Made by a program: the position numbers and the translations under genes | In this document: one piece after another, positions 905 to 63,320 of the stretch | How the letters are laid out: each line of letters starts with the position of its first letter | How positions within the stretch are numbered: the first letter of the stretch is position 1 | Notes under the pieces: model-generated | Database searches by the model: none | What the model was told of the DNA's origin: nothing | The model's input: the letters and a program-made list of their open reading frames with translations, nothing else | Source of the DNA: Paragordius varius | Taxonomy: Eukaryota; Animalia; Nematomorpha | Assembly (NCBI GenBank): GCA_964247055.1 | Contig: OZ176056.1 | Location: 5,332,001-5,396,000 of the forward strand | Direction of reading: 5' to 3' | Length of the DNA: 64,000 nt

Positions 905-964
905 CAATTGGAGCGCCTCGGTATTCAGGCTGTCCACTCGATTGACTCTTTTTTTCTTTTGACA
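905..964 (-). CDS. Micro-exon type C, 60 nt, phase 1-1
   Basis: aattctag| (V)SKEKKSQSSGQPEYRGAPI |gtagat. Confidence 0.7.
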
Positions 965-1977
965 CTAGAATTATGAAAAATAAAGTCTTAAATTTATATT
1001 ATTATATTATAAAAAATATCATTATAAGGTTTCAATTTTTCTGTAGAATATCCCGTGCCTCTAAGTATGCTATTAAGCAATTACGCATGATTAAGATATA
1101 TAGGCCGTTGAATTTTCTTGTATATTTTGTATACTTTTTAATGACAAAAACCGTTGGATTAAAATTGAAGAAAAAAACAATTAAAGATAAACCATAAAAA
1201 CTTGTTAACAAAAAAATCAATTTGTATATATCCTTTTACATTAAAAAGATTATATGTTTTAATTGGTAATAAATATAAATATATTCTCAATAATGAATAG
1301 GAAATGTAAAATTTAATATTCAGTTTCCTTAATTGTTTAAAACTTTTTTAAAAGTAGCATATTAAAAGGTTATTAAATAACATGCTGTGAATTTGGGACT
1401 TTTCGATTAGCAGTATGAAAATTTTTCAAATAATTGGTAGCGATTAAAAAGTATTATTATTTTCATTAATTCCAATATATTTTTTATTTGTTAGAAAAAT
1501 AGTTGAAAATTCTGTTTTAAAAAATAAATTTGATAAAATTTAAGTTATATAGGCATGGGATTATCTGCTAGAATATTAAGTAATTTTATTCAAAAGGAAA
1601 GACGATTATTAATCGAAATTCTAAAAATGTTGTTACAACAATCATTTTAATCATAAGATAATTTTAAAAAAAATATTAAATATAGCCTATTAAAACTTTG
1701 TCCATATACTTCCATACAGTTAATGATTCCTATAAATTTTGACATAAATAGTGCGCCATCCATAATCAAATGGTATTTTGGCGATTAACTCCTAAAAACT
1801 TTAAAGTATTGGTAAACTTAGAATGGTTTTATAATACTAAAAAAATATAGTGCCTCAACATATCTCAAATAAATAGTATCAATGCCACTGCAATTCACAA
1901 TTTAAGTCAAAAATATTTATTTAAATTTGTAGAGATCATTGATTTTAGGCAAAAATATTAATTAAAAAAATTTATAC

Positions 1978-2040
1978 CAGATGTATTATTTGGATTTAAT
2001 TTAGATTCCATTTCAATTCCATTTGTACCTTCTTGGGATT
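1978..2040 (-). CDS. Micro-exon type B, 63 nt, phase 1-1
   Basis: atttatag| (E)SQEGTNGIEMESKLNPNNTS |gtataa; a second in-frame AG gives 54 nt. Confidence 0.65.
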
Positions 2041-3001
2041 CTATAAATTATATAATACATAATGTTTATAAATAAACTTTGTTAAATCAATTATAAATGT
2101 AGTTTTACTGTCTTACCTAGATCTCTCAATCGGAAAACAATGAATTTTTAAATAATGATTTTTATTAATCTATTTTTGAAGAAGAAAACTTAAAAAAAAT
2201 ATTTATAAATTGTTTTAACTTCAAAAATCCATATCTTAAAAAAAAATAAAAATTTACAAAAAAATTATTAAAATTTATTTAAAAAAACCAAAATTAAAAT
2301 TTGTAAATATTATTTATTATGGGGAGAGCTTGTTTATATATGTATTTTTGCAGACAGTTTACCTATTATTTAAACAAAAACTGTGATTAACCGGTCTAGC
2401 TGAGAATGAGGAAAATTTACCATTTTCATTTATAAACAATAATTTTGCCGTATTTAAAAACAAGTGATACCTAAAATTAGAGTTTTAGTTTATATTTTTG
2501 TATGCAATGTTATTCTGAAAACTACTAAAAATACATTTTTGACCATATATTTGGCAGATAAGCATAAAAATTATTTGTCAAAGGGTATTGTGTGTCTTGG
2601 CATCGTATATATGGATCGGATGATGTTAGTATATAGAAATATTAAGTGTCAAACGCCAAAATAACTATATATGCACATGGCTATAAAAAGCTTCCTAACA
2701 AATTATAAGACAAAACGGACAAATTTTTAATCCTACATTAGGAAAAATATTGAGAAATAACCGAAGCATCACTCAAAAAATAAAAATATTAATAGTGTTT
2801 TTATATATTTCGGAACCATATTAGAATTTTCATATGGGATCAATATTTTGTAATTATATAAACATTGAAAAAAGTCGTATATTTTTTATGATTAATTAAT
2901 AAATCATTACATAACTCTTTAGATATCAAACAATTTAAAAACTTGACACTTTTCAATGTACATTTCTTCACTTTTCTAATTAAATTAAATCCTTTTTTTT
3001 A

Positions 3002-4227
3002 TACTAACCTCTTTTCGAGAAAATATTTAAATTATTAAAAAAATATCTTTATAAATTTGATTTATTTAGGTATCGTTATCTTTTATAATTTAAAATGATA
3101 TATTTGGCCTTGAAGAATAGTTATCCAACGATATTAACTGTTTCATATATATCAATATCCAAAGTTCGTAAATAAGGATGCTTTTCACCATTTTTATATT
3201 TTAAAAAATAAAATAGTAAAACATAAGTTTTAAATTGAAATGTGTAGAGTTTGATTAAAATGTCAAATTTAGCTGAAAATTATGCTGAGATTGGTTGAAA
3301 AAAGGTTTGTAATATGTGTTATTATACCGAAATTGGACAGAATAAATTAAATTACTAAATACCAGTAGAGCCTTCTATACCGTCCACTGTAATTTTTACG
3401 TTGGAGACTATAAATATATGAATAGTTGACAATTACATTTGAATTAATATAAATAAGTATCTATTACTTTGTTTTACTAACATAGTAAATACTGATGCAA
3501 AAAAGCGAATGATTAAAATATAAAATATTTGTAGGAAATATACTATACTAGTAATGAATAACTATCGCTTTATTGAGCTAAGTAAGGGTCGGTTGAATAT
3601 AAAATTCTAATTACTACCAAGTAATATTTACCCAAATAAAGTAAATGCAAATACTGATGGGATGATTTGCGGGATTTAATAAAAAAATGGAATAGAATCG
3701 TAAGACACTATTTTAAAATAATTCGAAACAACCACATCGGAAAATGCAAGACATTATTTGAAAAAACCTATTAAAATGAGACATTTATTAAAAAATATTT
3801 CTAGGACCGCTTTTATATATTAAGGATACAGAGAAAGATCCGATGGTTTCGACATCTAAACTGTATATTATCGTATAAATTGATGAATCTAATCTTTTTT
3901 CGCTAAAACCTATTATTTGCAAATTAATTTTTGCTTTTAAAATTTTTGCGGGCAATAATTTTCTTAGAAAAACCAGATTGATAATCATTGGAAAATTATA
4001 TTGCAAGGGAGATAACATGATAAGGTTAATTTATAAAAAAAAATTTTCAAACATCTCTTTAATGCCTATATCATGCGTTGTAAAATTTACGGTGTATTTA
4101 AAGATGCCATAACCCAAAGCGATATGGCTCAATACGATTAAGCGCTTCTGTGTGATGAATTTATCGGGTTAGAACTGCCGCTGAGTTATGCCATTTATAA
4201 ATAAATTGCGGAGATTATTGCGAATGC

Positions 4228-4263
<36 letters not shown>

Positions 4264-5453
4264 CTTAATAATTAGATTTATTTTTCCAATTACCCTTTTG
4301 ACTTTGTGACTAAAAAACTGTCGTTATGTGGGTATGGGTTATGACATCTTTAAATACACGGTAAATTTTACAACGCATTATATAGGCATTAAAGAAATGT
4401 TTGGAATTTTTTTTTCATAAATTAACCTTATCATGTTACCTCCCTTGCAATATAATTTTCCTATGATTAATCTGGTTTTTTAAGAAAATTATTGCCCGCA
4501 AAAATTTTAAAGGCAAAAATTAATTAGAAAATAATAAGTTTTAGCGAAAAAAGATTGGAATCATCATTTATACGATAATATACAGTTTAGATGTCGAAAC
4601 CATCGGATTCTCTGTTTCCTTTATATATAAAAGCGGTTCTAGAAATACTTTTTAAGAAAAAGTTTCATTTTAATAGGTTTTTTCAAATAATGTCTTACAT
4701 TTTCCGATGTGGTTGTTTAGAATTATTTAAAAATGGTGTCTTACGATTTTATTCCATTTTCCAATATTAAATCTCACAAATCATCCCATCAGTATTTGCA
4801 TTTACTTTATTTGGGTAAATATTACTTGGTAGTAATTAGAATTTTATATTCAACCGACACTTACTTAGCTCAATAAAGCGATAGTTATTCATTACTAGTA
4901 TAGTATATTTCCTACAAATATTTTATATTTTAATCATTCGCTTTTTTTTGCATCAGTATTTACTATGTTGGTAACACTAGGTAGTCGATACTTATTTATA
5001 TTAATGCAAATGTAATTATCAACTACTCATATATTTATAGCTCCAACGTCAAAGTTACAGTGGACGTTATAGAAGGCTCTACTGGTATTTAGTAATTTAA
5101 TTTATTCTGTCCAATTTCGGTATAATAACACATATCAACATAAACTTTTCAGCTAATCACATAATTTTCAGCTAAATTTGACATTTTATAATCAAACTCT
5201 ACACATTTTAATTTAAAACTTATGTTTTACTATTTTATTTTTTAAAATATAAAAATGGTGAAAAGCATCATTAATTACGAACTTTGGATATTGATATAAA
5301 TGAAACAGTTAATATCGTTGGATAACTATTCTTTAAGGCCAAATATATCATTTTAAATATTATAAAAGATAACAAAAACTTAAATAAATCAAATTTATAA
5401 AGATTAAATTTTTTTAATTAAATTTTTAATATTTTCTCAGAAAGAGGTTAGTA
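3002..5453. mobile_element. Foldback-like palindrome, ~1.1 kb inverted arms around a 218-bp spacer
   Basis: 3002-4116 (tactaacctc...ataaccca) is the reverse complement of 4335-5453 (tgggttat...gaggttagta) with scattered mismatches. The spacer contains (AT)n. No TSD or transposase is seen. Confidence 0.8.
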
Positions 5454-5877
5454 CGAATTATATTCATAAGAGATTCAATTTTTCTGCAACCTCTGCCTCT
5501 CTAAGTATGCAATTACAATTACGCATGATCGAGAAATTGGCCGTTAATATTTTTGTAAAGTTTGTATACTTTTTTAACAAAATACCGAATTCAATCTGTT
5601 AATATTTAATAAGAAAATAATTAAAAACATATAAAATTTTTAAAACACTAATTTATATTATCCATTTACGATAAAATTATGCGCCATCAATAATCAAAAA
5701 TATATATATTAAGGCGAATAACTCTTTAAAAAAAACTCCAAAGTATTAGTTAATTTAGAATGTTTTTTTAAATTTAATATCTAACAAAATATATCTGCAC
5801 TTTACTTATTCATTTTAGTTAGACTTTTTTTTTAAAAAAAAATTGTTGAGAATCTTGGAAATCAAAAATATAAATAA

Positions 5878-5940
5878 CAGATATATTATTTGGTTTTCCA
5901 CTTTCTTTAGATTCCATATCAGCTCCATCGATTGTTACTT
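5878..5940 (-). pseudogene. Dead B-type micro-exon (acceptor AG>AA, donor GT>TT)
   Basis: 63 nt, still reads (E)VTIDGADMESKESGKPNNIS; duplicate at 30180-30242. Confidence 0.6.
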
Positions 5941-6481
5941 TTGAAGATTTTAAAATACATAATATATATTTAATATATTTAAGTTAAATTATATTGCGAA
6001 ATCGGTCATCAATGTAGTTTTTAAATATTTCATACAATTCACTGTATCTCTCAATTAGAAAATATTGAAAAACTCAAAATGGTTTTCTGCTATTTTTGAA
6101 GGATAATTTCGTTTAAGCTTTTACAGCATCTAACTTAACGGTACCAATTTGTATAAATATCCATTACGATAAAATTAATATAAAATAGCCAAATAAATTT
6201 TTTCAAATAGTACCACAACGCTAATGATTCATACGAATGATATTATTGCGCCATCATTAATCAAATATGTATTCTGGCGAATAACTTTTTAAAGAACTCT
6301 ATATCAACTTAAAATCTGTTGAGTTGAATATATATTAAGTAAATATAGTGCCTCAACATATCTTAAATCATAAATAGTGACCAGTAAGTCACTGTAATTA
6401 CTGATGATTTTAGTTGCAACCCGTTTTTTAAAGAAATTTTGTTAAAAGATTTTGGCAAAAAAATTTAAAAAAACTTTATAC

Positions 6482-6541
6482 CATATATAGTATTTGTTTT
6501 TCCACTTTCATTAGATTCGATCTCAGCTCCATTAGTTACTT
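6482..6541 (-). CDS. Micro-exon type B, 60 nt
   Basis: atctccag| (E)VTNGAEIESNESGKTNTIY |gtataa. Confidence 0.7.
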
Positions 6542-7141
6542 CTGGAGATAATAAAATACATAGTATATAATTAATATTTATAAATTAAATTATATTGCTA
6601 AATCGGTTATAAAGTAGTTTTTGTTATTTTCATATAATTCACTAGATCTCTCAATCGGAAAATATAGATGACTAAAAATGATGATTTTATTAGTCGGCTC
6701 TTTTTGAATTATTTTATATTAATTTGTTAATTTGAAAATAATTAATCTTTAATGAAAATATTCAACTAAAATTTGAAAGTCTTTTCAAATAGTTTTGCTT
6801 CGAAGACTAAATATATTTTGCATATATTTTTCATAACAGATTAGATACACATTTGACCTAACAACTAAAATTTATAATTGGGGGTTTAAAATGATCAATC
6901 CTTATGAAAATTTCCAAGATATCAATATAGAGAGTTTATGTTATTCGTTTAAAAGCTATGACTTTTAAGTTCATGTCATCAAAGTTTACTGTAAAATTAA
7001 TTTATTATATTTGGCCTACTGCCTTTATTTTGGTATTATGTTGCATTTCAGATATTACCATAAATATGATAATATATGTGAAAAAATATTAAGACATTGT
7101 TACTCAAAATTATATTAAACCATATATTTTAAAATTATAAC

Positions 7142-7198
7142 TTTTTGTTTTTGGATTAGTATCATTGTTAGCAGGCGCATTGTCCTTTTCTTCGGAAT
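7142..7198 (-). CDS. Micro-exon type A, 57 nt (ancestral donor deleted, in-phase cryptic GT)
   Basis: atttgaag| (D)SEEKDNAPANNDTNPKTK |gttata; the donor is not homologous to other copies. Confidence 0.45.
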
Positions 7199-7342
7199 CT
7201 TCAAATATTATTTAGAGTAAAGTATTTAATATTTTTGTTATATTAATACTAAAACATCATTAATAAAATGCCAAGTCTAATATTTATAAAATTATATTGC
7301 AAAAGGGGTTGTGCAGTTAAAGAATGACCTTATAGCCTCACA

Positions 7343-7665
7343 CAGTGGTGGAACTATAAATTGTGCCCCCCCGCAATTAAATACTGGCCAACCTTTCCCC
7401 CAAAATCGTATGAAGTTATCTTTTCACCTGGCGCCTAACTTAGATTCCTTAACATATATTTAAACCTATCCTATGTGAAGCTTTCTCGATTTCGCCTGTC
7501 AGCATGCTCACATATTCGTTGATAAAGACACATTGTCAACATATGCGTAGAATACAAACCTATTATAGCAGCGGGGAAACTGCTTAATAAATTAATTGCT
7601 AAAAGTTATTTTTTCGGAATTCGGATAAATAAAATTTAGACATTGTTTAGTCAGATATGGTAAAA
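7343..7665. mobile_element. Truncated hAT-1 copy (left end only)
   Basis: gcctcaca|CAGTGGTGGAACTA start. Similar one-ended or internal fragments lie at 1-465, 14974-16150, 18558-19465, 24047-24777, 31649-31965, 39316-40490, 41584-41757 and 46941-47827. Confidence 0.8.
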
Positions 7666-8397
7666 GTTTTTTGTATTTATTCCAAAAAATAGAATATTTA
7701 ATTTATTGACAATTATATAAATTAAAATGTTATTGTAGTAGTTGGAAAGAGCAAATATCTTGTATACAATATGTCCAATTTTGGGGTCCGGTTGACGTTA
7801 AAATTCTTATTATAGGCATAAAGTTGAGTAATCTTTTATTAACATAAAAAAGCTACTGGGTTCATCATATGATATTTAAATTATTTTGCCCAAAATTTTA
7901 ATTTAGTATAACATTTTTCGGGATTATTAAATTGCAAGCCAGACATGAATCATAAAATTATATAACAAATTTATTATAAAATCAGATATTAAACTACTAT
8001 ATTATATAATAATGTGAAAGTTCATCTAAAGAGGAGAGCTGATTTTCCGTATTAAAATGCATTCAAACACTTAAAATAAAATTTATTTTGCCTCTTATAT
8101 TAATTTATAAGGCGGCAAAAGGCCAATGATAGTTTAACATTACTTTTAAAATTTATGCATTTAGGTCATATAATGCAGGTATATACTTTAGCTCGATATC
8201 TTAGATATAAAAGTATGCATTTTAATGGTTGTTCATTCCACACTATAGTTGCGCAATTTGCTACACAGTGTATGGAAGAAACAACAAACAATCACCTTTA
8301 TTTTTTCATGCACTGTGTTGCAAAATACCCAACTAGAGGGACAACGATTATAATACATGAGAATCGTTGAAATCTTCGATAAATCAAAAAAGGACTT

Positions 8398-8437
<40 letters not shown>

Positions 8438-10571
8438 TAAGTAAAGGATTTTTTACATAGTTATTTAATTAAGAATGGCAAAAACGTTTACAAAAGATTT
8501 TAAATATATAGTTAATATTTAGTAAATATTTTATTTTTTCTATAACTTTTTTAAGATTAGAAAAAAAATAAAAAAAAAGTAAAAAAATATATAATAGTGG
8601 AAATGATGTAAAGATATTAACTAGTGAAAACCAGTATCAATACTGGAAAAATCTAAGGAAACCGGGTTTCCTTTTTTATTCACATCACCCATAGTTATAA
8701 AAAGTCTCTAATGGATGGATTGATTGTACAATCGTTTTATTGTAAAATATATTTCTATAACAATGTACAAAAATCGCCTGAAATTATTGATCTATTCATT
8801 TTTGTAATCATTTATACGCGTTTTTGCCATCTGTTTAACTATATAAAATGCGTGATTCTTTACATATTTATTTAAATAAACTTTGCAAAACTTTATTGTA
8901 TACAATTTTTATTCAAGCATCATGTTATCAATCAAAAGCAATATCTTTTTAATCGTCATTGCTTGAAATAATGCTTTTGCTTAGCTTAACATAAAAGTTA
9001 TAAAAATCATTATAACCTATTAAATTTATCTCTCTAATAATTACTATGAAATTGGTATAACTATTTATTATATTTTAGCAACTAACTATTAAATAAACCT
9101 TAAGTTCTAAACAAGTAATTTAAGAAAGTCTTTTTTAAATTTAATATATACATCATTCTCAGTCAAAAGGAACATTTTTTCCGCAAAGACAACTGATGAA
9201 ATGTAAGTTTGCATGAACAAATGTTGTCTTTGCTTGTAAATGTTGCTTTTGGCTGTAAAAACGTTGCATTTGACTGAAAAAGTGTTTGGCTGAAAAACGG
9301 TATGTTAATGTTCCTCAACAAATATGTCTAATTAAATTTCTAAGACCCATGTAATTATTGATGATTAAAATGGTTATCGAAGTTTTGTAATAAATTGTGG
9401 TAAGCTTGATCTTAGGTTAAAAAAATAAATTAAACAATTATATACCATAAATAGTTGTTGTCTTTGTTTTAGTTACCCTCTCCATATCTAATATTGAAGA
9501 TGATATAAAATCGGTAAATAATTACTGTCAAAGATTAGATATTTGACCAAATTGGTCATGTAATTTAAATAAATGCCACTTCTTTCCATGGAGGCGGAAA
9601 TTAACTATAATTTTTACGACTTTTTAAAAAAATCCACAACATTAGTTATTTTTAAAAAATAAGTATTAAATACAGTTAAATATGAAATTTGATAAATTAA
9701 TATCATGAGATTTGTTTATTAGTGTAGTTTATGGACAAAGGCTAATATTTTTCATAATAATGTAACTCGTTCGTGAAAATGTAAAGAAATAGTATTAAAA
9801 AATGAGAAATGATCCGGATCGTAAAACATTTTTGCTTTAGGTAAAAATAAATCTTCTCAAATACCGAAAGAATCATAATTATTTTGTTCGGAAAGGCCGT
9901 TAAGTAGTGTCTTAGGTAGACAAAATTGATAATTTATAAAATTATTATTATACATACATATAAAACGGTATGATTACATATGTATATCAAGCCAACAAAT
10001 TTGATATAATCTTTTACAACAAGTAAGTAAAGTGTGTCAACATCAGATGTTTAAATAATTCAAATATAATTTGGACTTTTGTTGAAAAAGGTTTCATATA
10101 ATATATAAAATTAAGTGTAATAATCCATCATATTGTAATAAAATCAAATTTAATTTTTTGAATATAATCGGACTTTCATCAAAATTTAATTATTTAAAAA
10201 AATGAAAAATCATTTTTCAAATTTGACCTCATCGGAGTTAAATATGTTTGCAAAATTATTCTGTATTAAAAGATATTTACTACCTAACAAGCAAAATTTT
10301 GAATTGGGGGTTTATAATTATCAATCCATTTAAAGAGAATCTTATGTTATTTGTTTTATAAGCGGTGACTATTAATGATGTCATCTAAGTTTACTGTAAA
10401 ATAATTTTTTGGATTTGGGTACCACTACCCTTATTTTGGTGTTATTTTACATTTAAAACCATAAATATGATAATATAAATAAAAAATTAATTATACAATG
10501 TTAATCTAAATTATATTGAACCAATGATATAAGAAATATAACTTTTAGCTATTATACGAAAAACTATATAC

Positions 10572-10613
10572 CAATTGGACAATCCTTGTCCAGAACATTT
10601 TCCATTTCTTCGT
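10572..10613 (-). CDS. Micro-exon type A, 42 nt
   Basis: atttgaag| (D)EEMENVLDKDCPI |gtatat. Confidence 0.7.
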
Positions 10614-10761
10614 CTTCAAATATTATTTAGAGTAAAGTATTTGATATTTTACATTGTTATATTAATACTAAAACATAATTAATAAAATGCAAGGTCTAAT
10701 ATTTATAAGAATATTTTGCAAAAAGAATTGTGCAGTTAAAATATGGCCTTATAGCCTCACT

Positions 10762-12806
10762 CAGTGGCGGAACTATAAATTGGGGAACCCCGCAAGCTTT
10801 AAATACTCGCCAACCTTTCCCCCAAAAAAATCGTTTGAAGTAATCTTTCAAATTGGCGCCTTACTTAGATTCCTAAAAATATATATAAATCTATCCTACA
10901 TAAAAACTATTCCTAATTCATAAATGGGACAGCTTGTTAAGTGAAGCTATGCGTAGAATACGGGCCTATCTAGGAATAGCACCGGGGAAACTGCTTAAAT
11001 ATAAATTAATTGCTAAAAGTTATTTTTTCGGAATTCGGATAAATAAAATTTTGACATTTGTTTAGTCAGAATAATTTATGGTAATATGGTTTTTTGATAA
11101 TAGGGCTTCGAACCGGTCCTAAAAAAGTGGAATTAAACCGTTCTTTAATTTTAAAATAACTCTTTTCCTAAAACAGCAACAGGTTCCAATACGACTTGAT
11201 AAATATGAAATAATTTATTGATTAAATCGAACATTAATGTGCGGACCGCCAAGTTTTTAAATTTTGAGAATGGCCCATTAAAATTGCTGATCACTGTTTT
11301 AGTGTGTGATGAAACTTTATCGAAAATTTGTTAACTAAAGATAAATTTTAAAATTACATGAATCAAAGGTTAAAAACATTAGAAAAATAATGCACATTTA
11401 TATATCAGCTAACAAATGTTTGCCAATTCTCTTAATAATAAAATATGTGAAATAACAATCATTCTGTTAAAATGAATTTCCTTCCGGATTACAACACAAA
11501 ACATTTTTTACAAAATTAAGGTTATTTCTCAATCGGCCAACATTAATGTAAATTGGCCTGCATAAATTGCATATATAATCAAATTAGATGTTAGAGAATA
11601 TTGTTATAATAAATGTTTTTCTTTCCCTATTTTTTTTGTTCACTATTAAGGCTAAAATTTATTGGATAGTGAAAAAATGCATCTTGTGCTCTTTCTTAAC
11701 ATAAACCCATTTCTTCATAAAAATTTAAATATGTACATTTCACATAACACTTGGATGCAATGCATTCATTTAAGTCTTTCGAAATTGGAATAGTTAGATA
11801 CCCCAAGCTTTTTTAAAAATAAACATATCAAATAATATGGAATGACATGACATAGCAAAAATTTGCACTTATATAAAATAAAAATATATCCAAAAATATA
11901 CTAGGTTGACTTATTTTAGTGAAAAGCCAAAAGTAAAAATTTAGTCAACATGAGATGTATGCATTAAATTTTTTTATAAATAATAATTAAACCACTTTTT
12001 TTATTTCTATCAATATTAAATGTTTTGAATAAAATATTTCTGTTTTAAAATTATATAAACGCAATATTTTGCAAATATGTTGTAAAATAAAAATGGCGTC
12101 AAAATAGTTTGATATGAAACTTTTTTTTTACAAAACTAAATTTTATATAAATGTTTTGGCTTGTTTTAATAATTTTTATTAGTATAGAAGCATAAATATA
12201 ATTTAGACCGTTTCTTTAAGTAACATTTTAAAAATATCAACTTAAATATAGGGGTATTTAGACAACCCAATATCGCATGAAGTGTTTAATAACAAAATAT
12301 ATCTATCTTAATATATTATTGCAAATGAAATTTTATTTGTAATTATTTTAATTTAACAAAGGCAAAAATTTACATCTGTCAAAATTTTGTGAATTCTCAT
12401 AAAATTATAATATTATATTTTTTATAACAAAATAATGGCCTTGGATATATTTTAGCTCCACTTTTAGTCCCAACTATCTATTATTTAGTTTTTAACTATA
12501 TTCACTTTAAGGTGTTAACTTGAGAGAAGTTAAAGGTATTCATTATTTATTAACTTATAATAAAACCGCTTATTAAGATACTGAAAAAATGCATTTTTTT
12601 CGCTTTTTCTTCCTTTTCAATATTTTCTTTATTTGCCAGCTTAAAATCAGGCAATCATTACTTATATATCTGTAAATAATAAAAGGTAAAAAATTCAGGC
12701 CCGCAAAATAGAAAGGGGGCCCAAATTTAATAGTATAATAATAAAAGGGCCCCTGTTTTGCCTTGCCCCACACTGCTCCCCCTAGCTCTCCGTAGTTTCG
12801 CCACTG
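10762..12806. mobile_element. hAT-1: non-autonomous hAT-type DNA transposon, both ends present (2045 bp)
   Basis: TIRs CAGTGGCGGAACTA / TAGTTTCGCCACTG match at 13/14. 8-bp TSD GCCTCACT / GCCTCACA. The empty site cttatagcctcataatcattaaacg is present in other units (e.g. ~16375). No recognisable transposase. Confidence 0.9.
11748..12284. mobile_element. ~540-bp MITE nested in hAT-1
   Basis: Termini CACTT...AAGTG with subterminal inverted gggg/cccc blocks; same family as 15567-16129 and 44577-45143. Confidence 0.7.
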
Positions 12807-13482
12807 GCCTCACAATCATTAAACGCTACTTGTTTTTTAAATCTATAAAAGCGTTTGTATTGATTGAGAAAATATTTGTCTTGTTTACGGAGAATGTTAT
12901 TGGGAAATTTGATCAATTGTTTGGGAAAACGTTTCGTTTGATTGGGAAAACATTTCCATTGAATATGATTATTAAGTATACAAGAATAATAGTATGATTA
13001 CACATTTGTTACAAGACAACAACTAAACTTCACAACTATATTGGAACCAATTAAAACTTTGTTTCCAGAACCTGACTTACAGTTTGATTTTTGGGTTTAG
13101 ACAGATAAAATTAACACAAATGATATATTCTAGCCCTTTTGAATCATAAAATTTGAAATTATACATATGCAAAATTGACAAATATTTCATTTTTAAAAAT
13201 ATGACTGTAAAAACTACTATATGGACTACACAATGATCTTAGTCCTTATCAAAATTACGCAATTTAAAATATTGTTTTAAAGAAGCAATAATATTTGATT
13301 GCGTTAAAGCTATAGATGGTTAGGGGACCTTATGCGGACGATGGGCGCGTTTTTAACAGCCCCTTAAAGCACTACCTCTTTAAATCAAAAAATATCTTTT
13401 AAAATAATTTTTACATTAAAATACATTATTAAACCATAGATAAAACATTGAGACTTTTGCCATTATGTAATATAAAATCTAC

Positions 13483-13530
13483 CAATTGGAGCGCCCTGTC
13501 TTCTCGATTGACTCTTTTTTTCGTTTGAAA
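13483..13530 (-). CDS. Micro-exon type C, 48 nt
   Basis: aattctag| (V)SNEKKSQSRRQGAPI |gtagat; 12-nt in-frame deletion relative to 905-964. Confidence 0.7.
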
Positions 13531-14034
13531 CTAGAATTATTATGAAAAATAAAGTCTTAAATTTATATAATTATATTATAAAAAGTATCATTATAAGGTT
13601 TCAATTTTTCTGTAGAATATCCCGTGCCTCTAAGTATGCAATTAAGCAATTACGCATGATTAAAATAAATAGGCTGTTAAATTTTTTTGCATATTTTGTA
13701 TACTTTTTACACCGAATTAAGCATGATATAATTAAATAAGAAAATAATTAATAACATAAAATTTTTTTAAAACTAATTTGTATAAATATCCTTTTACGAT
13801 AAAATTATGCGCCATTAAAATCAAATAATATGTTTATAAGGCGCACTTTTTTTAAAAAAACTTTAAAGTATTAGTTAACTATGTGTTTTTCAATTCAATT
13901 TATAATAACAAAGTTTGCCTCAACATATGTTAAATCATAAATAGTAAAAATTCTATGATCTCTGCACTTAAATTATTGATGTTTTTAGTAATTCCAAGAT
14001 CTTAGCAAATAAATCAATTAAAAAAAATAAATAC

Positions 14035-14097
14035 CAGCCATAGTATTTGATTTTCCATTTTCTTTAGCTTCCATCCCAGATCCCCTATTTGCTACTT
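14035..14097 (-). CDS. Micro-exon type B, 63 nt
   Basis: atatccag| (E)VANRGSGMEAKENGKSNTMA |gtattt. Confidence 0.7.
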
Positions 14098-14821
14098 CTG
14101 GATATTTTAAAATATATACTCTATAATTGATATATCTAAGTTAATGGTAAATCGGTCAAAAATGTAGTTTTTATAATTTAGAGAAAACCCACTATATCTC
14201 TCAATCGGAAAATATATAATCTCAAAATGATGATTTTCAGCAGTCGGCTATTAAAGAATAAATTGATATAATTTTTACAACAAGTAAGTAATGTGGTGAA
14301 CATCAGATGTTTAAATAATTTACATTTTTAAATCTAATAATTTGACTTTTATTGAAAAAGCTTTCAAATAATATATATAAAAAAGTTTAATAATCCATCA
14401 CATTGAAATAATTAAATTTAATTTAATTTCTTGAATATAATCGGACTTTCATCAAAATTTAATTATTTAAAAATATTTTCAAACTTGACCTCATCGGAGT
14501 TAAATAATATGTTTGCAAAATTATTCTGCATAATAAGATATTTACAATTTCACCTAAGCAAACTTTACAATTGGGGATTTATAATTATCAATCCATTTAA
14601 AGAGAATCTTATGTTATTTGTTCGGTGACTTTTTAGTTCATGTCACCTAAGTTTACTGCAAAATCAATTTCTGCCCTTATTTTGGTGTTATGTTACATTT
14701 CTGAATAAGACCATAAATATGATAATATAAATAATAAATTAATTAGACAATGTTACTCTAAATTATATCGAACAATGATATAACAAATATAACTTTTAGC
14801 TATTATACGATAAAATTATAC

Positions 14822-14866
14822 CTGTATTTGTTGTACTGTTAGCAGGAACATCCATCTTTTCTTCGT
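14822..14866 (-). CDS. Micro-exon type A, 45 nt
   Basis: atttgaag| (D)EEKMDVPANSTTNT |gtataa. Confidence 0.7.
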
Positions 14867-15566
14867 CTTCAAATATTATTTAGAGTAAAGTATGTAATAT
14901 TTTACATTGTTATATTAATACTAAAACATCATCAATAAAATGCAAGGTCTAAAATTTATAAGAATATATTGCAAGTGGCGGAACTATAAACTGTGGGCAC
15001 CCCCGCAAGCTTTAAATATTGGCCAACCTTTACCCCAAAAAAATCGTTTAAAGTTATCTTTTGACCTGCGTCTCACTTAGATTCCTCAAATATTTAAACC
15101 TACCCTACTATGAAGACTAAATTCCTAATTCATAAATGGGACTGCTTGTTAAGTATCGCTTTCTTAATTTTGATTGGCATGCTCACATATTCGTTGATAT
15201 AAACACCTTGTCAACATATGCGTAGAATACGGGCCTATCTAGGAATAGCAGTTGGAAAACTGCTTAAATATAAATGAATTGCTAAAAATTATTTTTTCGG
15301 AATTCGGATAAATAAAATTTTGACATTTTATTAGTCGGAATAAAATATTTTTTATGGTATAGTGGTTTTTTGATATTATAATAAGAGGGCTTTGAACCGG
15401 TCCTTAAAAAGTGGAATTAGAAATGGTCTTTAATTTGAAAATGAATCTTTTCTTAAAACAGCAACAGGTTCCAATACGACTTGATAAATATGAAAGAATG
15501 GATTGATTAAATGGAACATTAATGTGCGTACCGCCAAGTTTTTAAATTTTAAGAATGGTCCATTAA

Positions 15567-16129
15567 CACTTGGATACAACATACTCATTTTAGTCCTTCG
15601 ATTCAAATTGGGGTAGTTCGATACCCCAGGCCTGTTTAAAATCAAATACTTCAAAAAGTATGGAAGCAATCGAAAACATGGCAAAATTTTGCACTTATAT
15701 AACATTAATAAACCGAAATATATAAAAAAATTTATTCAAAACTACTTGATATTACTTATTTTGAGCTAAAACTGAAAGGTAAAAATTTAGTCAGCGTGAA
15801 ATGTGTCAAATTGTAAAATTATAAAATAATACAAATTAAACCGCTTTTTCTACTTCTATCAATGTTAGATGTAATTTATATATGAAATACTTTAGTTTTA
15901 CCCTTAAAATTAAATGAAGACGATATTTTGCAAAATTTGTGTAATCGAAGTAGTTTGAGATGGAACTTTTTTTTCCAAAAAAATTTTATCTAAATATTTT
16001 GGCTTTATATAATATTTATCAGGATAGAAGCATAAATTTAAATTGGGACCGTTTCCTTCAGTAATTATTTAAAAATTTTAATTTAAATTTAGTCTGGGGT
16101 ATTTAGATATCCCAATTTGTATCGAAGTG
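15567..16129. mobile_element. ~560-bp MITE inserted at a TTAA site inside hAT-1
   Basis: ccaTTAA|CACTTGGATACAA ... TTGTATCGAAGTG|tgtaaattgcc; the empty site ccattaaaattgc is seen at ~138 and elsewhere. Confidence 0.75.
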
Positions 16130-16186
16130 TGTAAATTGCCGAACAACTGTTATTAAAATAAACTTTTTGCTATTAAATGAAAAATC

Positions 16187-16242
16187 CAATTGAATTAGTA
16201 TTATTTTTAGCGGCACATTGTCCATGTTTTTTCCTTCGGAAT
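16187..16242 (-). pseudogene. Dead A-type micro-exon (56 nt, frameshifted, donor lost)
   Basis: Length is not divisible by 3 and the donor reads GA instead of GT; duplicate at 40525-40580. Confidence 0.6.
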
Positions 16243-17121
16243 CTTAAATATTATTTAGAGTGAAGTATTTAATAATATCCATTGTTTTATTAATACCAAC
16301 AGTAATAAAATGCGAGATCTAAAATTCATATGAATATATTGCCAAAAGGGTTTTGTAATCAAAAAATATACCCTTATAGCCTCATAATCATTAAACGCTA
16401 CTAGTTTTATAAATCTAAAAAAGCGTTTTTATTGATTGATGAAATATTTGTATTGTTTGAGAAAAATGCTATAAATAAATGGGAATATCGATCAAAGTGT
16501 TTCGACTGTTTGGGAAAAACATCATATTGACTGGTAAAACGTTTCGATTGAATATGATTGTTAAACATACATCAATTACAGTATGATTACACATTTATTT
16601 CAAGATAACAACTCAATTTAATAATTATATTTTGGAATTAACTAATCAAAACTTTGTTTCAGATATTAATACAGGCGATTCAGTGTAAATTATTTTTATA
16701 GCAGATGTATTTATCACAATTGACTTCGCGATCCGCATTTTAGGATCAAAAATCCGAAGGGTCACATTATCGAAATTGAGCACAAACATTTTAATTAATT
16801 TTTAACATGACTGTAAAAACTAATATTTATTTACATAATGTTATTAATTTTTGCCAAAATTATCGAAATAGGAAAATTTGTTTTGGAAACAAAATTTTTT
16901 GATCCCAAATCTATATAAATGGTTAGAGACCGGAGGATGATAGGCTGTTTAACACCCTGTGTAGTGTACTACCTTAATTGTGATACCATGTATTAAAATA
17001 ATATCCACATAAACGTGAAAATAAATTTAAGAAATAACTTTTATATAAAATATTTTTACTATAAAATATATTAATGAACCACTAATAAAAGAACTTTTGC
17101 CATTTGTAATATATAATCTAC

Positions 17122-17181
17122 CAGTTGTAGTGTTATGGGCTTCAAACTCACCATTGGTTTCATTCTTATTTTGTTTTGACC
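17122..17181 (-). CDS. Micro-exon type C, 60 nt
   Basis: aactatag| (G)SKQNKNETNGEFEAHNTTT |gtagat. Confidence 0.7.
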
Positions 17182-17684
17182 CTATAGTTATTATTTTAAT
17201 TAAATTTTAATATATAATTATATTCATAAAAGATTCAATTTTTCTGCAGGATACCCTCTGCTAAGTATGCAATTACAATTACGCATGATCGAGATAAATT
17301 GGCCGTTAATATTTTTGTAGAGTTTGTATACTTTTTTAACAAAACACCGAATTCAGCATGATAAAATTTAATAAGAAAACAATTAATAACATTAATTTTT
17401 AAAAAACTAATTTGTATAAATATCCTTTTACAATAAAATTATGCGCCATCAAAATCAAATAATATGTTTATATGGCGAACTATTTAAAAAAACTCTAATA
17501 TTAGTTAACTATGTGTTTTTTAATTCAATATATACTAACAATGTGTGCCTCAACATATATCAAATCATAAATAGTAAAAATTCTATGATCTCTGCACTTT
17601 AATTATTAATGATTTTAGTTCGAATATTTTTTTTAAAAAATATTTACAAGATCTTGGCAAATAAATCAATTAAAAAATAAATAC

Positions 17685-32695: not shown

Positions 32696-32739
<44 letters not shown>

Positions 32740-46741: not shown

Positions 46742-46795
46742 CAATTGTATTAGTATTATTGTTAGCAGGAACATTGCCCATGTTGTCTTCGGAAT
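46742..46795 (-). CDS. Micro-exon type A, 54 nt
   Basis: atttgaag| (D)SEDNMGNVPANNNTNTI |gtatat. Confidence 0.7.
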
Positions 46796-47827: not shown

Positions 47828-50520
47828 TCCATCCAACGCGCTTTAGGGCGCCCTTTCCCCTCTTGCCTTTCACAATATAATCATCAATCTGTTTACCAAT
47901 GTAAATATTAGCTCTTCTTTTAACATGTCCGAACCATCTAAAACGATTTACCATAAACTTTTGCGTTATTGGTTTGATTTCCGTACTTCCTCTTATGTAG
48001 ACATTCTTCACCTTGTCATTCCTCGTTACACCGCACATCAATCTAAGCATTCTCATTTCAGTAACCTCCAAGTTCTCTTCTGATTTCTTTATTGCCCATG
48101 TCTGTGAGTTGTACATCATTTTTGGCTGTACAACAGCACTGTAAATCTGACCCTTTACTTTTAGGTCAATATTTTTGTCACACAAAACCTATGAGATCTT
48201 TTTATAATTTGCCCAATTATTTCGAATTCTTAAATTAATATCAAGTGTTAAAGAACCATCTGCTGCTAAAATCGCTCCTAAATATTTGCATTCCTCCTGT
48301 TTAATACCCACCCTTCTTCTAATTCTATTTCTCGTTTTTTCCCGCCAAAATTTATCAGTTCTGTTTTCTTTTTATTAACTTTTAATCCGCATCGTCGTAA
48401 CATATCAATCCATTTACCCACCAATTCTTTCAATTCATGCAACTCGTCGGACAGCCTTATTAGGTCGTCTGCATAAAGAAAATATAGCCACCATGTTGCC
48501 CCAGTTCTTTTGAAATTTGGTCTAAGCATATTATAAATAGTAACGGGCTGATTGCAGACACCTGATAGACCCCTTCGTTTATTTTAATAGAACCTGATAC
48601 TCCCTGGTGTGTTTTAATTTTGGTTTGGGAATCGTACATGCATTTTAAAATCTTTTTGTACCTTTCAGGGACGTTTTTCCGTCTTAAGCTCCACCATATT
48701 GTGCTCCGTGGTATTCTGTCAAAAGCCTTTTCAATATCAATACAAATACCATGCAACTCCTTTTTCATTTCTATATGCTTCTCGATTAGCCTTCTTACTG
48801 CGATCGGATCAATGGTGGACTTTCCTGAAAAAAACCGAATTGATTACCCTCTATACTAACCATTTTTCTCATTCTTTTCTCTAGTACTTTCTCAAATAAC
48901 TTCATTGTATGCGACATCTCTAATTATTACAATCATTAATATCTCCTTTACCCTTGAAAATGGGAACAGTGAAACTCTTCTTCCATTCGGTTGGTATCAT
49001 GCCTGTAGTTACTACATTATTAAAAATATCCGTCAAAAATTCAATACCTTTCTCTGACATTATTTTCCAACAGTTTATGTTATTATCGTCCGGACCTGCA
49101 GCCTTATTTATTGACATCTCTTTCAAACCAGTCTGGACTTCTTCTTTTGTTATACTTTCAATATGCGCAGATATATAATCTGGTGTTTCAGGAATTTGTT
49201 TCACTGACGCCCAATTCAAGCTCCTGGAAGTATTCTTTCCACCTTTTCAATATTTTCGATTCCTCAACGAGTAATTTGCCGTTTTTATCTTTAATAGCTG
49301 TCCCGTAAGGGGGCAAGTCTAGCTTTCTTCTGTGTCTTTGTCGAGCAATTTTAAAAACTTTGTTTAGATCTTGCTTACTGTTTACCTCTTTATATAATGA
49401 TGAAGTCTTATCTTTTTTGACCCATTTTACAAGCCTTTTAAGTTCCTTATTAATCCTTTTACATTTTTCCTTGTCTCCTGCTTGGTGGGTAAACCTCCAC
49501 ACAAAAGCTTTATTTCAGCCATGCCTCTCTATAAACCTGATTTCTGCCACCTTTCATCCCGCACACCTTAACTCCCGCCTTCATATTTTTCTTGCCACCT
49601 GAGATCAAACACTTTTTAAATCACTGTTCCTGTCTACTATGCCTACCGTTTCTACAAATCTCTCTTTACTGTTTCTTAGGGATTCCCATTTAATTACTTT
49701 CGTCGCTATAAACTTAGGCTTTTCGGCATTTATTGGTATATCTGTCATATATTTACACATAATTAAATTATGTTGTGTGCTAATCTGCAGGTTAGGTATG
49801 ACTTCGCAACTTTAAAGACTGTCGTGGCAATAGAATATAATCCATTTGTAACTTCTTATTTCCACTTTCGTAGGTAATTAAGTGGCTATCCCTTTTAGTG
49901 TATTTGCTATAGCAATGTTATAGGATTGGGCAAATTTTAATAAACTAGCCCCTTCTTCATTTATGACCCCGTAACCATTTCCGCCGTGCCAAGGCTCAAA
50001 CCTCTCCTATTTTGTCCCACGTGCTTATTGAAATCACCACAAAATATGATTTCTTTGTCTTTCGTTAATGAGGTCATTTCTGCGTCTAATAAATCATAAA
50101 ATTTATCTTTCTCCGGTTTAGCTAACCCTATCTGGGGGGCCTAAACGCTAAAGATAGTAAAAACCCTCTTATTTAACAATAGGTCGACACTCATAATTCT
50201 ACTGTCAGCACGTCTAACCTCAATTACTTGATTGGCAAATCATGAACACACCATTATGGCGACCCTACTGTAACCATCCGTAGAACGTGAATAAAACATT
50301 TTATATTTATCCTCTAATGTCTTAGTACCATTTCCACGGTATCTGGTCTCTTGAATGCCCAAAAAATTTACTTTTTTACCCTCATAATTTAACTAAATCA
50401 TATTACTTACTTTTTAACGAACCAACATTTATACTGGCAAAACACACTCTACAACATTCCTTATCCCTATTGACCCCTACCTCCGTGCAATGGCTGGATC
50501 TGGCCTGCACGCCTTACAAA
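47828..50520 (-). mobile_element. Decayed non-LTR retrotransposon (RTE-like; APE endonuclease + reverse transcriptase)
   Basis: Endonuclease motifs SINVGSL, GIQETR, SV*APQ, GDFNKHVG. RT motifs IDIEKAFDRI, AISPLLF, YADD. C-terminal TEMRMLRLMCGVTRNDKVKN and RFRWFGHVKR. Many stops and frameshifts; the 5' boundary is approximate. Confidence 0.9.
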
Positions 50521-51131: not shown

Positions 51132-51197
51132 CAATTGGATTAGTGTCATTGTTAGCAGGCGCAACCTTAGATGGACTCGCAATGTTTCCTTTGGAAT
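51132..51197 (-). CDS. Micro-exon type A, 66 nt
   Basis: tatttaag| (D)SKGNIASPSKVAPANNDTNPI |gtatat. Confidence 0.7.
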
Positions 51198-52932: not shown

Positions 52933-52971
52933 CCATTCCACTTCCTAATGCTGGAGTTGTTACTTCAGGCA
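52933..52971 (-). CDS. B-related micro-exon, 39 nt
   Basis: aaaaacag| (V)PEVTTPALGSGM |gtataa; read-through would add GIKTFIDILYFTYLCIYKFFNDFALI* ending at 52853. Confidence 0.6.
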
Positions 52972-53188: not shown

Positions 53189-53225
<37 letters not shown>

Positions 53226-54801: not shown

Positions 54802-55035
54802 CTGTAATATTAGCTTCACCGTAATACACAGTATTACCAAATTCTGAAGAGACAATTATGGTTACATTGATGAGTCCAATCATATCGGTAATTATAGTAA
54901 CACTAGTCGCATTCAGATTGGTATACAAAATTTTTCCTTCCCTGCTTACATTATACAATGATATCCCATCATTCGATTCCCAATCCAATTTGATAGAGGA
55001 GTCATTATTTATGGTCCAGTTTATTGGGAAAGTTA
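54802..55035 (-). CDS. Divergent FN3-like beta-sandwich exon, 234 nt, phase 1-1
   Basis: tatttcag| (V)TFPINWTINNDSSIKLDWESNDGISLYNVSREGKILYTNLNATSVTIITDMIGLINVTIIVSSEFGNTVYYGEANIT |gtgatt; SIxLxW, YxV and TSVTI pattern; six N-glycosylation sequons. Confidence 0.75.
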
Positions 55036-55806: not shown

Positions 55807-56034
55807 CTGTGATAACTTTACCGATATAGGTAAATCTATCATATTGTGAAGAGACAATTATAGTTGTATTTTTGGCACACATATCGGTCCTTATAGTAGC
55901 ACTAGTCGCATTCAGATTGGTATACAAATTTTTTCCTTCGCATCTTACATTATACAATGATATCCCATCAATCGAATCCCAATCCAATTTGATAGAGGAG
56001 TCATTATTTATGGTCCAGTTTATTGGGAAAGTTA
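55807..56034 (-). CDS. Divergent FN3-like exon, 228 nt, phase 1-1
   Basis: tatttcag| (V)TFPINWTINNDSSIKLDWDSIDGISLYNVRCEGKNLYTNLNATSATIRTDMCAKNTTIIVSSQYDRFTYIGKVIT |gtgatt. Confidence 0.75.
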
Positions 56035-56181: not shown

Positions 56182-56240
<59 letters not shown>

Positions 56241-57975: not shown

Positions 57976-58014
57976 CCATTCCATTTCCTGCTGGAGTTGT
58001 TACTTTGGATGGCA
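57976..58014 (-). CDS. B-related micro-exon, 39 nt
   Basis: aaaaacag| (V)PSKVTTPAGNGM |gtataa; compensating 3-nt indels relative to 52933-52971; read-through gives GIMTIIDILYFRYLCNC*. Confidence 0.6.
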
Positions 58015-58402: not shown

Positions 58403-58639
58403 CTGTGATTTCAACTTCACCGCGATACAGAATTTCAGATTGTGAAGAGACAATTATGGTTTTATTGGTGAGTGAATTCATATCGGTATTTATAGTAACA
58501 CTAGTCGCATTCAGATTGGTATACAAATATTTTCCTTCGCTGCTTACATTATACGATGATATCCCATCTTTCGATTCCCAATCCAATTTGATAGATGAGT
58601 CATCAATTCTGGTCCAGTTTATTTGGATAATTTCAAATT
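58403..58639 (-). CDS. Divergent FN3-like exon, 237 nt, phase 1-1
   Basis: tgtctag| (E)FEIIQINWTRIDDSSIKLDWESKDGISSYNVSSEGKYLYTNLNATSVTINTDMNSLTNKTIIVSSQSEILYRGEVEIT |gtgatt. Confidence 0.75.
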
Positions 58640-61607: not shown

Positions 61608-61670
61608 CAGCCATAGTATTTGATTTTTCATTTTCTTTAGCTTCCATCCCAGATCCATTATTTGCCACTT
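61608..61670 (-). CDS. Micro-exon type B, 63 nt
   Basis: atatccag| (E)VANNGSGMEAKENEKSNTMA |gtattt. Confidence 0.7.
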
Positions 61671-62554
61671 CTGGATATTTTAAAATACATACTATATAAT
61701 TGATATATCTAAGTTATATATTGCTAAATTGATCATAAATTAGTTTTTATAATTTAGAGACAACCCACTATATCTCTCAATCGGAAAAATATAATCTCAA
61801 AATTATGATTTTTAGCAATCGGCTATTTTTAAATAATTTGATATAATTTTTTACAAAAAATAAGTAAAGTGGTGAACATCAGATGGTTAAATAATTCACA
61901 TTTTTAAATTTAATAATTTGGCTACTTTTGTTAAAAAAGCTTTCATATAATATATAAAATAAAGTGTAATAATCCATCAGATTGAAATAATTAAATTAAA
62001 TTTAATTTTTTAAATATAATCGGACTTTCATCAAAATTTAATTATTTAAAGAATTTAAAAATCATTTTTCAAACTTGGCCTCATTGTATATCATAATTTT
62101 GTGTTTAAAAATTAAAAATTCGCATATAAAAGATTAAATTTGAGCCATGTCAAAAATTAAATTATTTAGGCATGGGAATCATGTATTAAATATTACATTA
62201 AAATTATTTTTATTCAAAAAAAACGATTAATATATCTATAATCCAAACTTCTCAAAACTTAATATAAAACAAATAGCCTACTAAAACTTTTTAAGCTAAT
62301 GATATCTATGAATTTTTACATAAATATTGTGCCATCAAAACTCAAATGTGTATTTTGGCGAAAAATATAGTAGAATGTGTTTTTGAATTCAATATATATA
62401 TTAAATAATTTTAATGGCTTAACATATCTCAAATTATAAATTTTAAAAATTGTATGACCTCTAAAAGACTGTAATTATGTTGATTTTAGTTGCAATCCTT
62501 TTTTAAGATAATTTGTGAGAAACAATCAAGAAAAATAATTAGATAACTATATAC

Positions 62555-62608
62555 CAGTGATATTCTTTGGTTTTACGTTTTCTTCCATTCTAGATCCATT
62601 TGTTACTT
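62555..62608 (-). CDS. Micro-exon type B, 54 nt
   Basis: aaatccag| (E)VTNGSRMEENVKPKNIT |gtatat. Confidence 0.7.
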
Positions 62609-63269
62609 CTGGATTTTATAATACATAATATATAACTAATATATCTAAGTTAAATATTGCGAAATCGGTCATAAATGTAGTTTTTATAATTTTCATACAA
62701 CCCACTAGATATCTCAATCGGAAAATATAGAATAACTCAAAATGATTTTTAGTAGTCGGCTATTTTTAACGAGTAAGTTAAGTGTGTGAACCATCAGATT
62801 TTTCAATATAATTCAATTTTTTAAAAATTTAATAATTTGGATACTTTTGTTGTATAACCTTTTACATATATAATAAATAAAGTGCCATAATTCAGATTGA
62901 AATAATTAAAAATATTATAAAAAACAATATTTTAAATCTAATTAGAATGTCATAAAATTATTTTTCAATTTGCTATGCATCGGAGTTCAAAAATATATTT
63001 GCAAATATATTACATAACAGGTTAGTTACTCATTTTATCTAATAACCAAAATTTACATTTGGGGGTTAAAAATAATCAATTCTTCTAAATTATTTGTTTT
63101 ATAAACGGTTTTTACGTTATTGTTGTCTAAGTTAACTATAAAATTATTTTTTTTCAGAATAATATCAGCATAAATATGATAATATATAAATAAAAAAATA
63201 ATCATATTCAAAATTATATTAAAACATTGATATAAATATAACTTTTAGCTATTATATGAAAAAATATAC

Positions 63270-63320
63270 CAATTGGATTATTATTTTTAGCGGGCACAAT
63301 GTCCATATTTCCTTTGGAAT
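63270..63320 (-). CDS. Micro-exon type A, 51 nt
   Basis: tattttag| (D)SKGNMDIVPAKNNNPI |gtatat. Confidence 0.7.

Follow-up and report, generated by a model that had tools for sequence, protein, structure and literature searches.

A candidate array of amplified micro-exons beside FN3 exons in Paragordius varius, probably encoding the glycosylated spacer of a large extracellular protein

What kind of gene, if any, is built from dozens of exons that are so short that an open reading frame (ORF) finder cannot see them? This question is raised by a stretch of 64,000 nucleotides (nt) from the nematomorph Paragordius varius (assembly GCA_964247055.1, contig OZ176056.1, positions 5,332,001 to 5,396,000), which we refer to in its whole length as the window and number from its first letter. 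An initial annotation, made from the sequence alone, had described 31 minus-strand islands in this window (11 of type A, 12 of type B and 8 of type C), each running from AG to G/GT (slashes mark exon boundaries), as symmetric phase 1-1 micro-exons of a functional, expanding system. The observation itself is confirmed, and the interpretation is partly supported: we find coding-type exons under frame selection in an array that has grown by recent segmental duplication, but not the small secreted product of a micro-exon gene (MEG). The explanation that we consider probable, judging from the features of the sequence, is that these exons form a cassette array in the gene of a large extracellular FN3 protein, where they encode a disordered, glycosylated spacer, and that this array grew by tandem segmental duplication.

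Copies of the islands were found with BLAST, nhmmer and MAFFT family alignments, which recovered 13-15 copies per family, and a script verified AG and GT at the homologous alignment columns of every copy. Three minus-strand islands (18420-18376, 17747-17685 and 17181-17122; 45, 63 and 60 nt) share one anatomy, an A/T-rich tract ending in AG, followed by GC-richer sequence ending in G and then by GTAT or GTAG. The alignments and the script reproduced the count of 31; as had been stated, every length is a multiple of 3 and phase 1 is free of stops in all copies. Firm intact copies with homologous splice sites number 29, that is 9 A (39-66 nt), 12 B (54-63 nt) and 8 C (48-60 nt). One A pair (7198-7142 and 31504-31448) is doubtful, and the caution that had been attached to its donor was justified: the homologous donor is deleted, and a weak substitute, GTTATA, gives 57 nt. 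Thus, of the ten lengths originally given, 39, 42, 45, 48, 51, 54, 60, 63 and 66 nt stand, while 57 nt occurs only in this pair.

Beyond the initial list, we found a divergent B pair (33798-33757 and 9487-9446, both 42 nt) and a new type D of 39 nt, which lies beside the FN3 exons described below (58014-57976 and 52971-52933, with flanks that are about 75% identical). The intact micro-exons, all of them predicted, number 33 and are 39-66 nt long and multiples of 3; with two FN3 exons the total is 35. Within the window, micro-exons are 33 of 35-36 exons, with 28 consecutive from 52971 down to 905. The introns are 0.5-4.4 kb long, and the cassette order is A, B, C, so that the types are interleaved (A-B-C-A-B-C). 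Eight copies are dead, with one or both splice sites lost. The micro-exons and the dead copies are given here one per line, where 'checked' denotes alignment and AG/GT check.

63270-63320, minus strand: A-type exon, 51 nt, phase 1-1; AG/GT verified, no stop
62555-62608, minus strand: B-type exon, 54 nt; 95.7% duplicate of 44052-43999
61608-61670, minus strand: B-type exon, 63 nt; checked
57976-58014, minus strand: D-type exon, 39 nt, phase 1-1; absent from the initial list
52933-52971, minus strand: D-type exon, 39 nt
51132-51197, minus strand: A-type exon, 66 nt; checked
46742-46795, minus strand: A-type exon, 54 nt; checked
43999-44052, minus strand: B-type exon, 54 nt; checked
42725-42787, minus strand: B-type exon, 63 nt; checked
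42117-42176, minus strand: dead C copy, acceptor CG, without donor
41967-42026, minus strand: C-type exon, 60 nt; checked
41455-41514, minus strand: C-type exon, 60 nt; checked
40525-40580, minus strand: dead A copy, 56 nt, with a 1-nt deletion and donor GT gone; duplicate of 16242-16187
39164-39208, minus strand: A-type exon, 45 nt; duplicate of 14866-14822
38376-38438, minus strand: B-type exon, 63 nt; duplicate of 14097-14035 with 1 nonsynonymous difference
37824-37871, minus strand: C-type exon, 48 nt; duplicate of 13530-13483
34892-34933, minus strand: A-type exon, 42 nt; duplicate of 10613-10572
33757-33798, minus strand: divergent B-type exon, 42 nt; absent from the initial list
31448-31504, minus strand: doubtful A copy; since the natural donor is deleted, 57 nt results only from the weak GTTATA
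30785-30844, minus strand: B-type exon, 60 nt; checked
30180-30242, minus strand: dead B copy, with AA at the acceptor and TT at the donor; the frame remains open
26295-26348, minus strand: B-type exon, 54 nt; checked
25241-25300, minus strand: C-type exon, 60 nt; checked
23247-23309, minus strand: B-type exon, 63 nt; checked
22594-22653, minus strand: dead C copy, donor GT changed to AT
21627-21665, minus strand: A-type exon, 39 nt; AG/GT check
20636-20698, minus strand: dead B copy, donor lost
20042-20101, minus strand: dead C copy, neither splice site left, contains one stop, GC 0.23
19898-19951, minus strand: C-type exon, 54 nt; checked
18376-18420, minus strand: A-type exon, 45 nt
17685-17747, minus strand: B-type exon, 63 nt
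17122-17181, minus strand: C-type exon, 60 nt
16187-16242, minus strand: dead A copy, 56 nt, donor lost; mobile element about 60 nt downstream (described below)
14822-14866, minus strand: A-type exon, 45 nt; checked
14035-14097, minus strand: B-type exon, 63 nt; checked
13483-13530, minus strand: C-type exon, 48 nt; checked
10572-10613, minus strand: A-type exon, 42 nt; 60-67% identity to the nearest A copies versus 85-91% in flanks
9446-9487, minus strand: divergent B-type exon, 42 nt
7142-7198, minus strand: doubtful A copy, natural donor deleted
6482-6541, minus strand: B-type exon, 60 nt; checked
5878-5940, minus strand: dead B copy
1978-2031, minus strand: B-type exon, 54 nt when read from the acceptor AG at 2033-2032
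905-964, minus strand: C-type exon, 60 nt; checked

The A-type and C-type exon regions cross-match weakly, with about 60-65% identity including flanks (18474-18320, 46855-46677, 51256-51055 and 63284-63211), and the three-exon cassette may itself derive from an older internal duplication.

One sign that these islands are exons comes from the sizes of their insertions and deletions. In alignments that were anchored at the splice sites and included one copy per recent duplicate and 150-nt flanks, each of the 12 indel blocks within intact exons has a length divisible by 3; in the flanks this holds for 24 of 76 blocks (Fisher 6e-6; 5e-5 when the one frameshifted dead copy is counted as well). This is the comparison of exons and flanks that the initial annotation had proposed, and its outcome agrees with the claim made there. 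The indel rate per column is equal in the two compartments (0.063 in exons and 0.069 in flanks), and about 9 out-of-frame indels would be expected in the intact exons, where we observed 0; indels are therefore not rarer in the exons, but filtered by frame. Phase 1 is the sole frame that lacks stops in all copies. Since phase 0 is likewise open in all A and C copies, it is only the B copies that single out phase 1. A single set of criteria applied to both strands yields 87 exon-like candidates on the minus strand versus 10 on the plus strand.

The base composition of the islands tells a similar story. The window as a whole is A/T-rich animal DNA with a GC content of 25%, but the GC content of the exons is 0.26-0.51, versus 0.14-0.25 for their flanks. 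From the spectrum of substitutions in the flanks we calculated that changes are, per site, about 2.8 times as frequent at G/C as at A/T, and a neutral island should therefore lose GC; the two oldest dead copies are down to 0.23-0.27. We also compared four DNA sets with positions 14250-20249 (40 substitutions and 9 indels listed, with 26 further). The 267 nt of intact exon sequence in this interval contain none of the listed variants; in the same samples, 2 substitutions and a 1-nt deletion were seen in the dead C copy (20101-20042). The sequence evidence supports the view that the islands behave like coding exons under reading-frame selection.

When the 35 intact exons are chained in genomic order, they give 2217 nt and 738 amino acids with no stop. 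All introns lie after the first codon base, and thus any exon can join any other without a frameshift; moreover, every exon ends in G, so the codon at a junction reads GNN (for Asp, Glu, Gly or Val in this array) and is never a stop, whichever exons join. The micro-exon part of this conceptual product is 584 amino acids long and is composed of 13% N, 12% E, 10% S, 10% T, 10% K and 7% G, with a mean hydropathy of -1.22 and a net charge of -26. It contains 22 N-x-S/T sequons, versus 14.2 +/- 3.1 after shuffling, and the FN3 exons hold 4-6 sequons each. This composition and these sequons fit a disordered, glycosylated extracellular spacer.

The folded part of the predicted protein comes from three copies of a 228-234-nt exon on the same strand.

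58403-58633, minus strand: FN3-like exon copy, 231 nt, without AG at the homologous acceptor, possibly dead
55807-56034, minus strand: FN3-domain exon, 228 nt, phase 1-1, tttcag/TA...ACAG/gtgatt
54802-55035, minus strand: FN3-domain exon, 234 nt, phase 1-1

Two of these copies are phase 1-1 exons with the boundaries tttcag/TA...ACAG/gtgatt and have the same final G as the micro-exons. Identity among the three copies is 85-87%; that of their flanks is 43-53%, save for one downstream flank comparison at 82%, and conservation is therefore specific to the exon. An AlphaFold2 model of the exon is a 7-strand sandwich (predicted local distance difference test score, pLDDT, 83; predicted template modelling score, pTM, 0.70), and its Foldseek matches in the Protein Data Bank are mostly FN3 domains (template modelling score 0.5-0.68, E about 1e-2, 4e-3 or weaker). 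Similarly, a language-model search indicated the fn3 and Ig-like families. A profile of the three copies found 58 protein matches among 1.84 billion (best E 9e-26), the best four of which are fn3-repeat proteins by Pfam, with 8-14 fn3 repeats; no match was close, and that library therefore holds no model or transcript of this gene. Pfam gave no real match for single FN3 exons, and a word-based protein search with one FN3 exon as the sole query found no homologue. On the basis of the modelled fold and the profile, we assign the 228-234-nt exons to the FN3 domain (PF00041).

The FN3 copies differ from each other by 28-31 nonsynonymous versus 2-5 synonymous changes. These differences cluster at residues ~30-35, 48-57 and 64-75, with invariant strand cores, a pattern that could reflect loop diversification or a bias of the method in A/T-rich DNA.

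The history of the array can be read from comparison of the window with itself, in which units of about 3.4-4.3 kb repeat in direct orientation. The same comparison shows a direct duplication of 16.9 kb.

421-17249, no strand assigned: 16.9-kb segmental duplication, copy 1, from self-comparison
24735-41583, no strand assigned: 16.9-kb segmental duplication, copy 2, with 100 substitutions and 35 indel blocks relative to copy 1

The nine recent duplicates counted in the initial annotation are accounted for by this event, which contains 8, and by the 44052/62608 exon pair, which sits in a separate duplication of 95.7% identity. In contig set X1, copy-specific contigs of the 16.9-kb duplication have depths of 232-313, compared to 189 for a single-copy contig; these depths, and the presence of both versions, favour a real duplication over a retained haplotype, although they are not conclusive. 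Tandem Repeats Finder did not detect the array in the window, because its period exceeds 500, and an Rfam search of the window had no match. The longest ORFs in the window are artefacts, pieces of a long interspersed nuclear element (LINE) or FN3 exons, and thus an ORF finder cannot see the micro-exon array, as had been claimed.

These observations are consistent with a model in which a single large gene on the minus strand spans the entire window and encodes an extracellular protein with heavy N-glycosylation. FN3 domains, with a phase 1-1 exon of about 230 nt for each, would make up the folded parts of this protein, and its long spacer or stalk would be encoded by the A, B and C cassettes of 39-66-nt phase 1-1 exons, together with type D by the FN3 exons. 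The array would expand and contract by unequal recombination between repeat units of about 3.6 kb, with the 16.9-kb duplication as the latest step, and single exons would die through splice-site loss. Selection would act on splice sites, frame, the absence of stops and a polar, GC-richer composition, as expected of a disordered glycosylated spacer. If this model is correct, the exons would be spliced into mRNA at present, as parts of a single transcript for an extracellular protein, and the length of its stalk might be varied by exon skipping.

Several results weigh against this model. The ends of the gene, a signal peptide and a membrane anchor would all lie outside the window, and the third FN3 copy lacks the acceptor AG. 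The absence of stops is only weakly significant on its own (joint P about 0.04 from simulated terminal-branch substitutions), and AG/GT conservation, which the initial annotation had expected to exceed that of the flanks, does so modestly (7 of 12 columns invariant versus 28% in flanks, P=0.027). The absence of variants from intact exons is not significant (P about 0.08). Among paralogous exons the pooled pN/pS is 1.06, and mean identity is 0.744 in exons versus 0.757 in flanks; the amino-acid sequence therefore shows no purifying selection, and we dropped codon-position and pN/pS tests as evidence for coding. Five RNA sets that carry the same species label contain a 0.00 share of the words searched, and RNA contig sets X7-X9, compared with 13400-19399, gave one trivial match of 18-23 nt, although contigs show presence rather than absence. 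A search of sequencing runs with one FN3 exon alone found no RNA set with its sampled words, and the libraries searched hold no assembled or annotated protein of this gene. In addition, exact scans of metagenome contigs from the Joint Genome Institute gave 0 matches to an exon-exon junction word and 0 to an exon B word. Six runs of unstated kind contain 41-81% of the words searched, and their depth and size indicate that they are DNA. On balance, what selection keeps here is, as read from the alignments, the frame, the splice sites, the absence of stops and a polar, GC-richer composition, and not the amino-acid sequence.

Three runs labelled with three other organisms (X5, X6 and X12; organisms B, C and D) contain near-identical DNA at 2-25x (14250-20249 and 54802-55035), and the contig sets of those runs amount to ~500 Mb. 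In those samples, the source animal probably occurs as a parasite, commensal, prey or contaminant.

How far might the array serve to generate diversity? Though we would not favour it, a micro-exon system of larger scale may have arisen independently in a parasite-type animal that is not a flatworm; its cassettes would build the hypervariable, glycosylated stalk of an FN3 surface protein, the A exons and FN3 loops would be diversifying and combinatorial skipping would produce many isoforms. A true MEG in the schistosome sense, with a secreted product, symmetric exons that are skipped combinatorially, variants shown to the host and diversifying A exons and FN3 loops, is unlikely. The array does have the structural features by which such genes have been defined, exons <70 nt with lengths divisible by three, four or more in a row (Olson et al. 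2020, PMC7653826), and low-depth DNA in runs labelled with other organisms is like that of a parasite. Moreover, in the 10613, 14866 and 18420 units the A-type exons share 60-71% identity, against 85-92% in the 300 nt of flank on each side of them (Fisher 2e-6 to 7e-4). B and C exons diverge at the flank rate. Between the 16.9-kb copies there are 4 differences in 471 nt of exon, all 4 of which change an amino acid. A mutation bias towards A/T also makes GC-rich islands change faster, by about 1.3-fold in our own estimate, compared to the 3- to 4-fold seen. Among the FN3 copies, dN/dS by the Nei-Gojobori method is 1.9-4.6, but this estimate is biased upward in DNA of 25% GC, and for this reason we do not claim positive selection on them. 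No transcripts that would show skipping were found, and no signal-peptide exon is seen in the window. The product, at least 738 amino acids with FN3 domains, differs from MEG proteins of up to 189 amino acids, and exons of 39-66 nt differ from the mostly ~15-nt exons of MEGs (10.1101/2023.06.21.545858).

About as unlikely is that the locus is a relic, with exons that were real for most of the history of the array, in a gene that is now silent in part or as a whole and has just begun to decay. Such a state would suit the lack of RNA in three contig sets, the 8 dead and 2 doubtful copies among 33 intact ones, the FN3 copy without an acceptor and the pN/pS near 1, as well as the insertions that have accumulated in the introns, two of which are listed here.

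47733-50500, minus strand: broken non-long-terminal-repeat retrotransposon in an intron (RVT_1, E 3e-10, several ORF fragments)
15563-16127 (also 39905-40470), no strand assigned: element of ~530 nt in an intron, like a miniature inverted-repeat transposable element (MITE), with terminal inverted repeats of ~60 nt, identified by depth and inverted arms

The retrotransposon lies in the 4.3-kb intron between the A exons at 51197 and 46795 and explains the peak of GC and skew at 48-50 kb. The contig depth of the MITE-like element is 1e5-1e6, versus ~230 for unique DNA, which indicates thousands of copies per genome; the dead A exon 16242-16187 ends ~60 nt upstream of it, and the element may have contributed to the loss of that exon. 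The third kind of insertion is a foldback-like inverted repeat in an intron (3002-4116 / 4335-5453 and 27319-28430 / 28641-29761), with arms of 1.1 kb that are 92% identical and ~220 nt apart. An island of 45 nt that resembles a phase 1-1 exon lies in one arm, at 3407-3363 (27724-27680), and is mirrored on the plus strand at ~4944-5181; this island is probably outside the transcript. What speaks against a silent locus is that the frame is kept even on the youngest branches, that loss of splice sites and frame is limited to a minority of copies, that intact copies keep their GC content and that, among the variants listed in four DNA samples, none lies in intact exons.

If the pattern arose by chance or ascertainment, the AG and GT would be merely common dinucleotides, the open frame would have been inherited from one ancestor and the boundaries would have been picked for multiples of 3. 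This explanation is largely refuted, and we regard it as very improbable. Two copies did need a donor chosen post hoc, phase 0 is open too in all A and C copies and the copies are related by descent rather than independent. However, the boundaries are homologous alignment columns and not free choices, the indel test gives the Fisher values reported above with or without the frameshifted dead copy, candidates are strongly asymmetric between the strands and the FN3 fold is encoded in the same phase on the same strand. Least credible of all is a Dscam1-like cluster, with one exon of each type per transcript chosen by mutually exclusive splicing, which would account for many tandem alternative copies per exon type, but not for types that are interleaved rather than grouped or for copies of 39-66 nt that encode disordered peptide in place of an interchangeable half-domain.

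We therefore return to the cassette array for a spacer in an FN3 protein as the preferred explanation. If it is transcribed, this array would be a clean natural case of selection that works on the frame, the splice sites and the composition, and not on the sequence itself, in a gene region that standard annotation misses entirely. In that case the A exons and FN3 loops, which evolve fast, would point to a candidate for a variable surface molecule.

Several known systems invite comparison with this array. The structural definition of MEGs cited above applies to 33 predicted exons, 28 of them consecutive, in that part of the gene which lies in the window. In the schistosome sense, MEGs have 10-20 exons, mostly of ~15 nt, and products of up to 189 amino acids with a signal peptide and no globular domains (10.1101/2023.06.21.545858), that is, a small secreted product with an N-terminal signal-peptide exon (DeMarco 2010; 10.1101/2023.06.21.545858). 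The array resembles MEGs of schistosomes and tapeworms in its runs of short exons (<70 nt), all divisible by 3, in having introns on the scale of 0.1-5 kb, in being invisible to an ORF finder and in its fast evolution, but differs in having at least 35 exons over at least 64 kb, amplified three-exon cassettes and FN3 exons. We therefore set aside a small secreted MEG for a product of at least 738 amino acids with FN3 domains, encoded by an array that runs off both ends of the window.

Dscam1 clusters consist of same-length variants of half an Ig domain, which are grouped by type and used singly. Tandem duplicated exon variants in one gene are common to both systems, but the interleaved types, the range of lengths (39-66 nt) and the disordered peptide led us to reject a mutually exclusive cluster. 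In modular extracellular proteins, phase 1-1 FN3, Ig and EGF modules have spread by exon shuffling. The window likewise has one FN3 domain per phase 1-1 exon, and its linker exons share that phase, which permits the gain or loss of modules; it differs in that the linker is split into dozens of micro-exons in a tandemly amplified cassette.

The closest mechanistic relative appears to be an exon array of the PEVK type known from vertebrate titin (TTN), a likeness of mechanism and not of homology to titin, of which we found none. A disordered spacer, adjacent to Ig/FN3 exons, is encoded in the PEVK region by ~100 short exons, with blocks of exons duplicated or triplicated in tandem in association with LINEs; exon number turns over between species, some exons are positively selected and gene finders miss them (PMC6469411). 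Short exons of the same phase, tandem block duplication, a hydrophilic low-complexity peptide and FN3 exons beside the array are all found here as well. However, the exons of this array are shorter, at 39-66 nt, and they encode N, E, S, T and K with N-glycosylation sequons, in place of P, E, V and K, a composition that suggests an extracellular stalk rather than an intracellular spring.

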